Source: Octopus sinensis
Taxonomy: Eukaryota
Direction: 5' to 3'
Assembly: GCF_006345805.1 (NCBI RefSeq)
Contig: NC_043025.1
Location: forward strand, 9,176,001 to 9,240,000
Length of the DNA stretch: 64,000 nt
Below, piece after piece: positions 51,816-62,874 of this stretch; position 1 is the first letter of the stretch, and every line of letters begins with the position of its first letter. The notes beneath the pieces are model-generated. The model saw only the letters and a program-made list of their open reading frames with translations, searched no databases and was not told the origin of the DNA. Position numbers and translations under genes: made by a program.

Positions 51816-54410
51816 ATCAAAATAAGCAACAAGAATGACTCCGGTAATTTGGTACGATCGTTTCGCACTACATCATTTTATTAAATGTTGTAAGTATTAC
51901 AACAGTATTAAAATGTTGAGCACTCATCAGCCATTATTAGAGGTTTTCCATTAATACATAATTTTCATATCAAGTCGCAACATTATAGAGAAGGTAGATG
52001 TATAGAGAAAGATGTGGATTTAAATTTTAAGAACATTTGAGGTAGTCAACTGACTGACTAAGATTCAGTTGTTCCAGACTACTGTAAGGTTCTGAGAGGG
52101 AGAATGAATGAATGAAAGGCGACAATAAAGATTTTCTATTTATAGAAATGGGGTGAGATGGATGTCAGAGCTCCATATAAAGGAATTTATGTAGAAGACA
52201 GGAGTGTCACAACTAAATGCCAATTACTACTATTTGATGAACAGATCCAGCGTTAGGAGAACTAGGTCAATGACAAATGGTCACAATAACATTCACAGAG
52301 AATGCAGAGACCTTATAAAAGCCATGCACATCATCACAACAATCAGCCTATAGGGTCCGAGTACTTTGACACGTTAGAATAAAGGGAAAATATATATATA
52401 AAATTTATTCAATTCATAGAAAAGACTATCACTTATTATGAGTAGGCATAGTACTTATTAACTGGGGGAAAATCCTTATTAATCAAATGAATATATTAGG
52501 GGTCAAAATATATACTAGGAAAGATGGAAGAGGTCACAATAACATTCACAGTTGGTCTATAAGTTCCGAGTACTTTGACACTTTAAAATAAAGGAAAAAA
52601 CATAACTCTAAAATTTATTCAATTTGGAGAAAAAGTCTATCACTTATTATGAGTAGGCATAGTACTTATTAACTGGGGGGAAAAGTCATATTAATCAAGT
52701 GAACATATTAGGGGTCAAAATATATCCTAAGAAAGATGGATAAGGAAAAATCAAAGAAGCAAGAAATTCGTAGGTTTAGTAGTAGGTGGTTTAATAATAT
52801 GAAGAGAGGTAATTTAGAAGAGTAAATTATTCAGATTTCATAGATAGTGAGTTGATATTAATGAATTAAAATATAGGATCTGTTGGAAATAATATTTACT
52901 ACCTGCGGATAAAGGTCAATTAGTTAGGTAATAATATCTTAGGTTAATTATATGTTAAGAAATTGAAGTGAGATAATCAAGATGAACCAAATAGTTTCCC
53001 TAGGGACATAGTATTAATACTTTTTAGTATTGGAGAACACTATAAATATAAGAATTTAATTCTAAGTTTGCAATGAAGTTCTTTAGTCATATATGAGTGT
53101 TAAACTAAAACCAGTATGGTATATTCGTTCATATTAGGTTAAATATATTTCGTAAAGATATCTTAGACTAATTATATATTAAGAAATGGAAGTGAGATAA
53201 TCAAGGGGAACCGAATAGTTTTCTTGGGGACATAGGATTCATATTATTTAGTATTCATACTATTTGGAATTCATACTATTTGGAATTCATACTATTTAGG
53301 ATTCCAACTATTTAGATTCATACAGTTTAATTTTAGAAAAAAGAAGAATTCAATTTTAAGTTTGCAGTGAAGTTTTCTTAGTCATCTATGAATGTTAATT
53401 TGAAAGCCAGTATGGTATATTCGTTTTTATTTGGTTAAAAATAATTAAAATTTGAAAAATTTAGGAATATTCAGAATTTTATTCTTTAAAGTATTTAATC
53501 GTACGGGTCGGGTCGTACGATGTATACAAGATAATCCTTGTTCCAAACGGTAATTCAACAGATTTGTATTACTCTGATGTTTCAAAATTTCATAAGTTTC
53601 CATAGAACAAAGTTGACAACCATCCCTACTATTTCAATAAGGTTGTTCTCTTCTTACTATATCCCATTTTAGATTGAATTCTATATTATTTGTTTATAGT
53701 TCCCAAATTTTACTAGACAATGTTGTGCGACCTGCTTTATGTTTGAGCCTAACGGAGGAAAAATTATTGTTTAGACGTTTTTTTAAAATCTAGCGAACAA
53801 CCGAAATAAAGAAAACTGTTGTTAGAAGTTATTATCGTGCATTTATAAATCACGTTTTGGACCGAACAACGGCCAGATACCGGACATTTTGATCTAATCC
53901 TATAATTACAACTGGGGGGGGGGGGATAGCTTCCAGTACTAGTATTATTTAAGGACAGTTCACTTCCATTACTGTTATCTGAATTATGGTTAGTATTAGT
54001 ATTATTTTCACTCTTAGTAATTACGTTGTTATGTAAATTAGGGTTACTAGTTATTAATCCATCCTCATTATCATCACCTACTACACTTTTATCTATACTA
54101 TCTATATTATTGGTATTGTTATTATCACTATTTACATCAATGTTGTTGTTATTATTATTATTATTATTATTATTATTATTACTTTTACAATTATTATTAT
54201 TATCATTGTCGTTACTATTCATTCTATTCCTAGCTAACTTAATGTTTTTAAGCTATTATGGTAGCCATATTTGGGAGTGTAGAATATTCAGGGGTGATTG
54301 GATAACTTATTTACATATCTGGTAACTTCACTCTCCTTTCTAAATGGGTAATGTAACTTTGAGTTTAAGTCTAAGGTAACGTCTTGGAAATTGTTGTTAT
54401 TTTATATAAG
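51816..54410 (-). mobile_element. Penelope-type PLE copy L (5'-truncated, internally deleted)
   Basis: Reverse complement of 59540-62874 with ~0.6 kb missing between the RT piece and the linker. GIY-YIG N-terminus CNYRIRSKCPVSGRCSVQNVIYKCTII...LYFGCSLDFKK. Flanked by (TA)n. Confidence 0.9.
51850..51933 (-). ncRNA. Type I hammerhead ribozyme (copy in PLE L)
   Basis: Same 84-nt architecture on the minus strand. Substitutions relative to the + copy fall in loops or unpaired parts of stem II. Confidence 0.72.
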
Positions 54411-54662
54411 TTTAGCATATATATATATATGTTTGCGTTTGTCTGATGTGTGACTATAGTACTTGTATTTATATTCTTTTATTCCCACTTCTTTCCCTAT
54501 TCTGATATAACACGTTATTTTTCTTGTCCTAATATATCTTGTTTTCCTGCATTTATCGTCTTCATCATAAATTTTTCTCTACATTTATCTTATTCATAAT
54601 TTTCTGGTTCTTCTGCTTTTAATTTTTTCAACTGCTTTCTCCTCTCTTCATGAATCATTTTC

Positions 54663-62300: not shown

Positions 62301-62874
62301 TTATTCTAACGTGTCAAAGTACTCGGACCCTATAGGCTGATTGTTGTGATGATGTGCATGGCTTTTATAAGGTCTCTGCATTCTCTGTGAATGTTATTCT
62401 GACCACTTGATATGGACCTAGTTCTCCTAATTCTAAATCTGTTCATCAAATAGTAGTAATTGGCATTGTGGTGTGACAATCCTGTTCTCCACATAAATTC
62501 CTTTATATGGAACTCTAACATCCCTCTCACCCCATTTCTATAAATAGAAAATTCTTTATTGTCTCCTTTCATTTGTTCTTCCCTCTCAGAACCTTACAGT
62601 AGTCCGGAACAACTGAATTTTAGTCAGTAATTTGATGGGCTCCACTACCTCAAATGTTCTTAAAATTTAAATCCACATCTTTGTCTATATATCCACCTTC
62701 TCTATAATGTTACCACTTGATATGTAAATTATGTATTAATGGAAAACCTCTATTCATGGCTGATGAGTGCTCAGCATTTTAAAACTGTTGTAATGCTTAC
62801 AACATTTAATAAAATGATGTAGTGCGAAACGATCGTACCAAATTACCGGAGTTATTCTTGTTGCTTATTTTGAT
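59372..62874 (+). mobile_element. Penelope-type PLE copy R (RT from YRDD, Asn-rich linker, GIY-YIG, long tandemly repetitive 3' region)
   Basis: GGLYRDDALF (59398-59409), VNFLDFTLDLN, NVIWLNIPFN, then the GIY-YIG with a few frameshifts. The 3' region has ~200-bp and 16-bp tandem repeats and ends in a hammerhead. Flanked by (TA)n. Confidence 0.92.
62757..62840 (+). ncRNA. Type I hammerhead ribozyme, canonical core, extended stem II
   Basis: TGG-CTGATGA-GTGCT[...tgttgtaa(tgc)ttacaaca...]AGTGC-GAAA-CGATCG-TA^CCA. Palindromic ACGATCGT stem III; predicted cleavage after A62837. Confidence 0.75.

Follow-up and report, generated by a model that had tools for sequence, protein, structure and literature searches.

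An inverted pair of Penelope-like elements assigned to the Hydra clade flanks an LRR exon in Octopus sinensis

The stretch of Octopus sinensis DNA analyzed here (64,000 nt, referred to as the window) carries two dead, oppositely oriented copies of one Penelope-like element (PLE), named arm L and arm R, on either side of the short LRR exon D. Judged by their junctions and by synteny, these arms are two independent, lineage-specific insertions and not the product of a segmental inversion-duplication. This conclusion is based on the findings that each arm has its own (TA)n tract on both sides and a different 5' truncation point, and that both corresponding sites in Octopus vulgaris consist of (TA)n without the element, with a colinear spacer between them. 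In our view the pair very probably goes back to two separate insertions of Hydra-clade PLEs into (TA)n followed by gene conversion, and represents a passive by-product of transposition. The coordinates of all features are compiled in Table 1.

Table 1. Features of the inverted element pair and the surrounding LRR locus (window coordinates)
Feature	Position	Strand	Remarks
Arm L	51818-54416	-	Hydra-clade Penelope-like element, 5'-truncated, internally deleted, dead
Arm R	59373-62874	+	same family as L, longer, 5'-truncated, dead
Internal tandem duplication, 256 nt	61904-62408	+	in the element 3' region of R; in L at 52279-52740
(TA)26 microsatellite	51765-51817	.	adjoins L 3' end (target)
(TA)7	54417-54430	.	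adjoins L 5' end
(TA)7	59359-59372	.	adjoins R 5' end
TA-rich microsatellite	62875-62930	.	adjoins R 3' end
Near-identical tract, R side	60462-62369	+	~99.5% to L 54181-52313
Near-identical tract, L side	52313-54181	-	counterpart of R 60462-62369
Host spacer	54431-59358	+	colinear with O. vulgaris L001 90967-96832, orientation unchanged
Hammerhead-ribozyme-like motif in R	62757-62840	+	UGG-CUGAUGA-(58-nt helix II)-GAAA-C-GAUC-G-UA/CCA
Hammerhead-like motif in L	51850-51933	-	core intact
LRR exon D	55455-55526	+	72 nt; same phase at both ends
LRR exon C	50847-50918	+	paralogous upstream neighbour of D
LRR exon A	23994-24065		upstream of C
LRR exon B	37991-38062		upstream of C

Anatomy and family of the arms

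The inverted homology between L and R is real and lies far beyond chance. A repeat search returned the arms as 52548-53925 and 60719-62096 (1378 nt, 99%), with four adjoining repeat blocks extending them out to 51816 and 62874. By blastn, 60462-62096 aligned with 54181-52548 (99.3% over 1635 nt) and 62136-62936 with 52552-51759 (91%). A gapped search merged these blocks into one alignment of 60416-62961 with 54225-51722 (2564 columns, 93.7%) and added a further block of 59530-59648 versus 54392-54275 (86%). The total of about 2.5 kb of reverse-complement homology agrees with the length given in the first-pass annotation. Its geometry, with a minus copy upstream and a plus copy downstream of exon D relative to the plus strand LRR exons, was likewise confirmed, and the outer limits of 51816 and 62874 that it had proposed turned out to be the 3' ends of the element, just inside the (TA)n tracts.

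The 5' ends of L and R point towards each other. Their inner ends are 4.9 kb apart, measured between the inner (TA)7 tracts (54431-59358), and the near-perfect parts of the arms are separated by 6.28 kb (54182-60461). Homology of L to R extends from the L 3' end at 51818 to 54392, followed by a 24-nt 5' tail of L (54393-54416) that is non-homologous to R. Arm R starts inside the RT, just ahead of the YRDD motif (59404), and comprises the C-terminal part of the RT, an N/K-rich linker, an EN remnant and a 1.7-kb 3' region. Its truncation point matches residue 320 of the related protein P0003; L begins 160 nt further in and is missing an internal segment of 600 nt present in R (59646-60245). Common to both arms are a stop codon that follows ...KKTSKQ, an EN frameshift and the 256-nt internal duplication.

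Full-length relatives of the element possess RWK, DKT and YRDD motifs, a CxCX5C linker, a GIY...YIG core without the CCHH pair, and CxxC-E-N-CxH. At their N-termini, MRWK... and ADKT were found in P0005 and ADKT in P0003; both arms are truncated downstream of the RWK/DKT region, at two different points, and neither of the two carries a pLTR or partial tandem. The RT region of R (59380-60291) matched the RT/post-RT region of the full-length relatives by tblastn with E-values of 1e-19 to 1e-28. At the motif level the EN is located C-terminal to the RT (VxY...YIG/YFG, followed by R, H, E and N), and tblastn placed its remnants at 53910-53508 in L and 60734-61136 in R. Throughout the EN alignment CxLC..E...LLN.R.E....C.H is invariant, with 0-1 Cys between VxY and YIG. 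The linker reads CNCxxxxxC in P0001, P0003 and P0005 and is degenerate in both arms (CNYRIRSKC). In Pfam searches, RVT_1 scored weakly in P0001, one of the relatives (E 0.004, below the cut-off), and was absent from the arms. Neither the conceptually translated arms nor the EN alignment gave a significant match, be it to RT or to GIY-YIG; a DUF123 match (E 0.13) is at most a hint. Searching PDB sequences with the EN profile returned no match.

Based on this motif signature, the (TA)n targeting and the hammerhead-like motif, we place the element in the Hydra clade of PLEs and not in Penelope/Poseidon. The Hydra clade signature, including (TA)n targeting and HHRs, has been described by Craig et al. 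2021 (PMC8557442). Shared with this clade are an EN recognizable by its motifs C-terminal to the RT, the CxCX5C linker, a GIY-YIG core without CCHH, CxxC/CxH around the catalytic E/N, RWK/DKT in the full-length relatives, (TA)n as the insertion target, a hammerhead-like motif close to the 3' end, and 5' truncation as a frequent feature. With Penelope/Poseidon (e.g. Penelope of Drosophila virilis) it has in common the same order, an RT plus a GIY-YIG EN (in the octopus element at the motif level), pLTR/inverted insertion structures and a hammerhead or hammerhead-like motif. However, Penelope/Poseidon elements carry the CCHH motif and have no upstream Cys linker (PMC8557442), which is the reverse of the situation in the octopus element. 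The initial label "Penelope" is therefore appropriate in the broad, Penelope-like sense and inappropriate in the strict Penelope/Poseidon sense, since CCHH is absent and the Cys linker present.

Hydra-clade elements are generally smaller than 3 kb (PMC8557442), whereas the octopus element already spans 3.5 kb from mid-RT to its 3' end as a result of the N/K-rich low-complexity linker and the 1.7-kb 3' region. The latter is attributed to the element on indirect grounds, since it reaches the (TA)n in both copies, and since about 2.5 kb likewise separate the EN from the HHR in an O. sinensis relative. Moreover, the clade has been described mostly from cnidarians (PMC8557442) whereas the present element derives from an octopus, and both octopus copies are dead, as exemplified by the replacement of the second linker Cys by Tyr.

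The putative catalytic core of the hammerhead-like motif is complete, with a helix III of 2 bp and a palindromic GAUC loop. A 2-bp helix III with palindromic loop has been described for metazoan type-I HHRs (PMC4209133). An O. sinensis relative that cannot be aligned with the window family elsewhere in its 3' region has an identical core, GGCUGAUGAGU...CGAAA-N-palindrome-GUACC, and helix I displays a compensatory change from U-A to C-G between the two families. When the core was constrained, the folds of both families had a long helix II; in unconstrained MFE folds the hammerhead was not formed and z-scores were weak. Compared to the Hydra clade, the helix II of 58 nt is unusually long. The motif is missed by Rfam, which reported no hammerhead in the whole window at the gathering threshold and none in 61800-63000 at E<=10. 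The only Rfam matches were spurious miRNA assignments on a TA microsatellite.

Exon D and possible consequences at the RNA level

The position of exon D in the first-pass annotation was supported by conserved splice sites (...tttcag preceding A at the acceptor, gtaagt following AT at the donor) and by an LRR reading frame that stays open at this place (DLSRCKIRIIQKGSFQNLPSLEE). One nucleotide at its start finishes a codon and two nucleotides at its end open the next one; as the phase is equal at both ends, skipping of the exon would be frame-neutral. The exon diverges faster than its own introns, with a pN/pS of at least 1, and on these grounds appears to be a functional coding unit. Regex and tblastn searches of the window and of the O. 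vulgaris locus L001 revealed no LRR exons beyond A-D and V1-V3, and neither an LRRNT cap nor a signal-peptide exon. An LRR-like ORF candidate near 15165 was dismissed on inspection. Two 14-kb units in the window are virtually 100% identical to each other in the assembly.

Relative to exon D, the L insertion site is located 1.0 kb upstream and the R site 3.8 kb downstream. If both arms resided in introns of one plus strand LRR pre-mRNA, a duplex of more than 2 kb might loop out exon D and cause skipping, back-splicing and/or ADAR hyper-editing, as was suggested in the first-pass annotation. We regard this as possible but rather doubtful, although looping, skipping, circRNA formation and editing would all be physically plausible. 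The arms are complementary in plus strand RNA, the perfect 1083-nt tract alone accounting for about -1760 kcal/mol, and loss of an apparently functional exon would leave the reading frame intact. Reverse-complementary matches reportedly promote both back-splicing and exon skipping. Among 19 species surveyed, octopus gave the strongest hyper-editing signal, mostly at neighbouring inverted repeats within the same pre-mRNA (PMC5625713).

Whether the gene extends to R bears directly on this proposal. The only gene model, O. vulgaris P0009, is a poor one and stops at the exon D ortholog, 4.7 kb ahead of the R site, and no exons were detectable between R and the window end. Both findings count against the proposal, for which the gene should not end before copy R. 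In favour of it, the sequence located 8 kb beyond the D ortholog in O. vulgaris shares homology with the start of the window, which itself is followed by exons A-D, and this resemblance suggests that further LRR units lie beyond the D ortholog. Against it speak the size of the loop (5-6 kb), the distance of 3.8-4.9 kb between the 5' splice site and its nearest arm, and the absence of both insertions from O. vulgaris, which argues against a conserved function. Single-exon circRNAs usually are far longer than 72 nt, and a single-exon circle from exon D would be an unlikely product. Octopus circRNA levels are reportedly low, consistent with repression by ADAR (PMC9699675). Provided that the region is co-transcribed, hyper-editing would be the most likely outcome in RNA.

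Inverted Alu pairs and other reverse-complementary intronic matches flank exons in various animals, where dsRNA arising from this geometry is subject to ADAR hyper-editing and can favour back-splicing as well as exon skipping. The pair described here resembles them in that oppositely oriented copies of one retroelement lie on either side of an exon, but its arms have about 8 times the length of an Alu and are 5-6 kb apart, and the exon comprises just 72 nt. A selected function of the inverted pair is not indicated.

Probable exchange between the arms and origin of the pair

Identity between L and R is not uniform along the arms. It amounts to 85.5% (~86%) in the 5' segment, ~99.5% over 1.9 kb in the centre and ~90% in the 3' segment, and the longest stretch free of differences covers 1,083 nt (60778-61860). 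This step corresponds to 11 differences in 1908 nt versus 50 in 507 nt (Fisher p = 7e-25). The 11 residual differences are concentrated towards the edges of the tract. For the 86%/99.5%/90% profile, recent gene conversion between the arms is the best explanation. Alternatively, the near-perfect centre might be an artefact of assembly or polishing, with arms that truly differ by about 10% throughout. The inverted structures of PLEs are known to trouble assemblies (PMC8557442), and the two nearly identical 14-kb units in the window may reflect either repeat problems or a very recent duplication. Nevertheless, an artefact appears improbable, since polishing seldom erases a divergence of about 10% over 1.9 kb while sparing both sides, and the clustering of the residual differences near the tract edges is as predicted by conversion.

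Inverted low-copy repeats such as the Y-chromosome palindromes, F8 int22h and FLNA-EMD undergo arm-to-arm gene conversion and NAHR inversion, and a crossover between inverted repeats would flip the spacer with no DNA being lost. As in these systems, a long uninterrupted tract of identity is found here next to more diverged flanking sequence, albeit on a much smaller scale with 2.5-kb arms and a 5-kb spacer. Given the long near-identical tract and the conversion-like exchange, inversion of the spacer by crossover is plausible. The idea of a DNA inversion put forward in the first-pass annotation is credible with respect to its mechanism and gains indirect support from the conversion-like tract. 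The one haplotype represented by the assembly has the spacer in the ancestral orientation, as judged against O. vulgaris.

(TA)n sequences are present at four out of four arm junctions. Beyond these tracts, comparison of the flanks revealed no homology, and at both outer ends the homology stops exactly at the element termini. The window segments 51066-51814 and 54417-59357 correspond to 89334-90305 and 90967-96832 of L001, respectively, in the same orientation. The L site of O. vulgaris consists of (TA)n plus an unrelated MITE and its R site of uninterrupted (TA)n, in which the motif ...acacgtaaacgtacgtat... of the R 3' microsatellite also occurs. No arm homology was found across the 102 kb of L001, and the element is present in 0 of the 3 paralogous units of this locus. 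The O. vulgaris region appears to be orthologous to the window, orthology inside a tandem array not being certain.

Against this background we rejected two alternative origins, both of which we rate as very improbable. An inverted segmental duplication of one insertion, e.g. by fold-back or replication template switching, would explain the very high identity over 1.9 kb as well as the stop codon, frameshift and duplication shared by the arms. However, homology ends exactly at the element termini on both outer sides, R contains 5' sequence and the 600-nt internal segment absent from L, the outgroup has (TA)n at both sites, and the flanking parts of the arms are just 86-90% identical; the shared defects all fall within the homogenized tract, where conversion accounts for them. 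In the second scenario, a single complex insertion, with an inverted 5'-truncated copy placed head-to-head against the 5' end of another copy, was later split by host DNA. Head-to-head topology is typical of PLE insertions (PMC8557442) and was observed in adjacent form in the O. sinensis relative L002, with a gap of about 0.5 kb. Older remnants within the window's 14-kb units display it as well. This scenario is contradicted by the 4.9-kb spacer, which is host DNA colinear with the PLE-free O. vulgaris locus, and by (TA)n at the 5' and 3' junctions of each arm, as in two complete integrations.

According to the preferred history of two insertions, target-primed reverse transcription would have placed two copies of the same family into two pre-existing (TA)n microsatellites, where they would have come down in opposite orientation, 5'-truncated and non-coding. 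The insertions presumably postdate the divergence of the exon-bearing repeat unit from its paralogs and, most likely, the separation from the O. vulgaris lineage as well. Later, non-allelic gene conversion may have evened out the central ~1.9-2.1 kb of the arms. The resulting structure would serve as a substrate for recombination that could invert the 4.9-kb spacer and, if the arms were co-transcribed, would give rise to dsRNA of more than 2 kb for which ADAR hyper-editing is to be expected. It is highly improbable that the inverted pair acts as a switch which, reversibly and through either DNA inversion or RNA looping, removes one hypervariable LRR cassette exon from a receptor whose single-LRR exons form a rapidly diversifying tandem array, and which thereby adds to the repertoire variation of an octopus LRR recognition protein.

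Implications

As a by-product of transposon insertion, the structure is ordinary and common in kind. It provides a well-resolved case of inverted retroelement copies of the same family in a repeat-rich cephalopod locus and documents octopus Hydra-clade PLEs with a hammerhead-like motif of long helix II that is overlooked by current Rfam models. The putative arm-to-arm exchange marks the site as a candidate for an inversion polymorphism. The LRR exon array appears to evolve faster than its introns and may constitute the more interesting biology. If RNA data tied the pair to the inclusion of exon D or to hyper-editing, the locus would offer a clear-cut natural example of a diversifying receptor gene that is modulated by a young TE pair.

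Insertion of the two arms

The inverted pair around LRR exon D consists of young, dead Hydra-clade Penelope-like elements (PLEs) that inserted into (TA)n tracts and appear to have exchanged sequence later. Its existence, claimed in the first-pass annotation, was borne out by three approaches. An inverted-repeat search returned 5 adjoining blocks pairing 51816-54181 with 60462-62874 (longest 1378 nt, 99%). Self-blastn paired 60462-62096 with 54181-52548 (1635 nt, 99.3%) and 62136-62936 with 52552-51759 (91%), and detected no further copies of this element family in the window. 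In a more sensitive gapped search the blocks of arms L and R merged into a single alignment of 2564 columns, supplemented by a block of 119 nt (59530-59648 versus 54392-54275, 86%).

Coordinates of arms, element features and LRR exons (window positions unless L001, the O. vulgaris comparison segment, is named)
Feature	Position	Strand	Remark
Arm L	51818-54416	-	
Arm R	59373-62874	+	
(TA)n at L junctions	51765-51817, 54417-54430		
(TA)n at R junctions	59359-59372, 62875-62930		
RT and post-RT region, R	59380-60291		tblastn with full-length relatives
C-terminal EN, R	60734-61136		tblastn with full-length relatives
C-terminal EN, L	53910-53508		tblastn with full-length relatives
Hammerhead-like motif, R	62757-62840		
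Hammerhead-like motif, L	51933-51850		
Exon A	23994-24065	+	72 nt
Exon B	37991-38062	+	72 nt
Exon C	50847-50918	+	72 nt
Exon D	55455-55526	+	72 nt
O. vulgaris exons V1-V3	L001 4389-4460, 50238-50309, 92054-92125		72 nt

All four element-host junctions touch (TA)n, and outer-flank homology between the arms ends at these tracts. The 5'-ends are unequal, L beginning 160 nt deeper in the element than R and carrying a 24-nt non-homologous tail. R 59646-60245 is missing from L, with ATAT microhomology at the deletion junction. The O. vulgaris segment L001 (OX597843.1:20.59-20.69 Mb), reached via gene model P0009, is colinear with the window at 51066-51814 (L001 89334-90305, 91-96%) and, in the same orientation, at 54417-59357 (L001 90967-96832, 84-93%). 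Its R site is an uninterrupted (TA)n...acacgtatacgtatgtat...(TA)n matching the sequence just 3' of R, and its L site reads (TA)n, an unrelated MITE of about 480 bp, (CA)n(TA)n. No homology to the arms was found across 102 kb of O. vulgaris sequence, the other two paralogous units included. Thus, the (TA)n junctions, unequal 5'-ends and synteny with its empty sites exclude both a single-event head-to-head PLE structure, as in the O. sinensis sequence L002 (gap of about 0.5 kb), and a non-transpositional inverted duplication. Since the 64 kb contain 55 (TA)>=5 tracts and at least 3 other Hydra-like PLE remnants, an inverted pair of one family is not surprising here.

The O. vulgaris MITE (L001 90320-90790, terminal inverted repeats of about 45 bp) occupies the same (TA)n tract as arm L, which suggests that elements insert into this microsatellite repeatedly. 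In blastn, window sequence from about 62960 onwards, past the TA-rich tract 3' of R, did not match what follows the R site in O. vulgaris. Older Hydra-like remnants lie in each 14-kb unit of the window, at 29252-29289 and 43238-43275 (minus strand) and 30083-30686 and 44069-44672 (plus strand), and another at 10823-10927 (plus strand). Within the units a compact minus-strand hammerhead motif (CCAC-CUGAUGA...GAAAC GAUC GUA-GUGG) faces a plus-strand RT fragment, matching the canonical adjacent head-to-head PLE arrangement.

Identity of the element and its hammerhead-like motif

R starts directly 3' of (TA)7, inside the RT and just before the YRDD motif. Searches of Pfam and PDB sequences gave no match to the element domains, and Rfam none to a hammerhead. 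The nearest database proteins are O. sinensis models and anonymous metagenome or SRA-assembly proteins of 635-769 aa. These relatives show MRWK at the N-terminus, ADKT and GGLYRDDALF, a CNCxxxxxC linker, and an EN with VVYKC...YIG (at most one Cys between) and C.LC..E...LLN.R.E....C.H. According to Craig et al. 2021 (PMC8557442), Hydra-clade PLEs possess RWK and DKT motifs, CxCX5C replaces CX2-5CxxC, CCHH is absent with CxxC and CxH flanking E and N, insertion is into (TA)n, and hammerheads are easily detected. The relatives' motifs and the (TA)n target match this definition exactly, and a putative hammerhead is present. The Penelope/Poseidon clade, in contrast, has CCHH and lacks the linker, and the window element differs in both. 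Hence, of the "Penelope" identity proposed in the first-pass annotation, Penelope-like holds and Penelope/Poseidon does not; motif-level comparison and homology to full-length relatives assign the element to the Hydra clade. N/K-rich coding low-complexity runs, (AAT)n and (AAG)n, in the linker (60330-60520 in R, 54150-54230 in L) have expanded unequally. Separate host microsatellites, (GAA)n and (ATC)n, adjoin L at 54660-55010.

Both arms carry, about 40-120 nt from the 3'-end, the motif UGG-CUGAUGA-G...C-GAAA-C-GAUC-G-UA|CCA. The relative in L002, whose ORF is 76-78% identical and whose 3' region cannot be aligned, repeats this architecture 2.5 kb past its EN (CGG-CUGAUGA-G...C-GAAA-C-AAUU-G-UA|CCG). 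All 4 copies share one core. Between the two families a U-A pair in helix I is exchanged for C-G, and each family has a palindromic 4-nt loop on helix III. Folds with only the core forced unpaired give a long helix II in both families; unconstrained folds are unremarkable. In metazoan type-I/PLE hammerheads helix III is short and its loop palindromic; they probably work as dimers, and single PLE hammerheads are reported to be almost inactive (Cervera and de la Pena, PMC4209133). The candidate motif agrees in helix III and loop and thus fits this type. L002 also contains, at 1435-2853 (VCDQ01005361.1), a retrozyme-like tandem array adjoining the PLE, with a 504-bp period and a compact hammerhead per unit (CTGATGATGGCTGCACTTTTCCTTGCGGAAAATA).

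Probable sequence exchange between the arms

Two insertions decaying independently would be expected to diverge uniformly. Arm identity is 85.5% over 59540-59645, about 95% just past the deletion junction of L, 99.4% over 60462-62369 (11 differences in 1908 nt, none in 60778-61860), and about 90% from 62370 to the 3'-end (50 differences in 507 nt; core versus 3'-end, Fisher p = 7e-25). Such a homogenised centre between older-diverged ends appears to be the signature of non-allelic gene conversion between the arms. The 5' limit of the near-identical tract coincides with the heterology made by the deletion in L. That this tract is an assembly artefact seems improbable. Both arms share a stop codon, a frameshift and a 256-nt duplication; because these lie within the tract, the duplication for the most part, they provide no argument against independent insertion. 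Real conversion would imply contact between the arms as DNA, and 54.4-59.4 kb would be inverted if a crossover resulted. The sequenced haplotype has the spacer in its ancestral orientation.

Exon D, the LRR array and a possible RNA duplex

Exon D was found between the arms as first annotated, with a polypyrimidine tract and cag acceptor, a gtaagt donor and an open LRR frame (DLSRCKIRIIQKGSFQNLPSLEE). Exons A-D are paralogous, and frame, LRR scaffold and splice sites are kept in all 7 LRR exons, O. vulgaris V1-V3 included. Divergence in these exons significantly exceeds that of the introns around them (identity in most pairs 74-81% versus 88-95%). D matches its ortholog V3 to 95% upstream of the exon, 74% within it and 92% downstream of it, the best case (p = 3e-6). 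With pN/pS >=1 and changes clustering at codons 1, 3, 4, 22 and 23, the pattern points to diversifying selection on the array. Given the conserved features and the fast divergence, exon D in all likelihood serves as a functional coding unit, subject either to diversifying selection or to conversion that comes from unsampled paralogs and is limited to the exon. Both ends share the same phase, so its loss would remove one LRR and leave the frame intact.

The window start, upstream of A-D, has its homologue in O. vulgaris 8-10 kb past the D ortholog (1-11583 versus L001 99948-102129, 93-95%, with a 9.5-kb insertion in the window at 1390-10868). Thus the array is cyclic and probably continues; its layout differs between the two species. 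The two 14-kb tandem units (19479-33391 and 33392-47373, about 99-100% identical, with exons A and B, respectively) reflect either very recent or assembly duplication; a partial third copy spans 47374 to about 51200 (90-94%). Shortly after R, 63256-63637 is a truncated additional copy (75-77%) of the post-LRR-exon segment, lacking the exon (compare 55933-56095 and 24497-24746). A spacer ORF at 56845-57108 (minus strand; ...YYPDLPPADLYLFFKMKNQLRA...) resembles by eye a mariner/Tc1 transposase C-terminus. Long self-complementary TA/TATG-rich microsatellites (57496-57757, 63637-63766) dominate the inverted-repeat list and gave spurious Rfam miRNA-family matches.

If both arms were co-transcribed, they would form a very stable duplex, the perfect 1083 nt alone being predicted at about -1760 kcal/mol, and the putative hammerhead of the sense-oriented R would be in the pre-mRNA. 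The probable continuation of the array favours co-transcription. However, no exons were detected from R to the end of the window, and P0009 stops 4.7 kb short of the R site, at the D ortholog. This model is weak (151 aa): its stop codon is a read-through into the gtaagt donor, which unspliced reads TTG TAA (Leu-stop), and P0009 and P0017 thereby both end in ...TL. A circle made of one 72-nt exon would be unusually small. Of 19 species, octopus had the highest hyper-editing, for the most part at inverted repeats lying close together in one pre-mRNA (Porath et al., PMC5625713), and octopus circRNA levels are low, consistent with ADAR repression (Zolotarov et al., PMC9699675). Under co-transcription, hyper-editing would be the most plausible outcome, then some exon skipping, then circRNA.

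Overall, the first-pass observation stands, and its interpretation is borne out in part. There is no evidence for any function of the pair, which adds one more example to types already described: inverted-repeat dsRNA sources, substrates of non-allelic homologous recombination, and PLE copies. The fast-evolving LRR exon array around it is arguably the more interesting lead.
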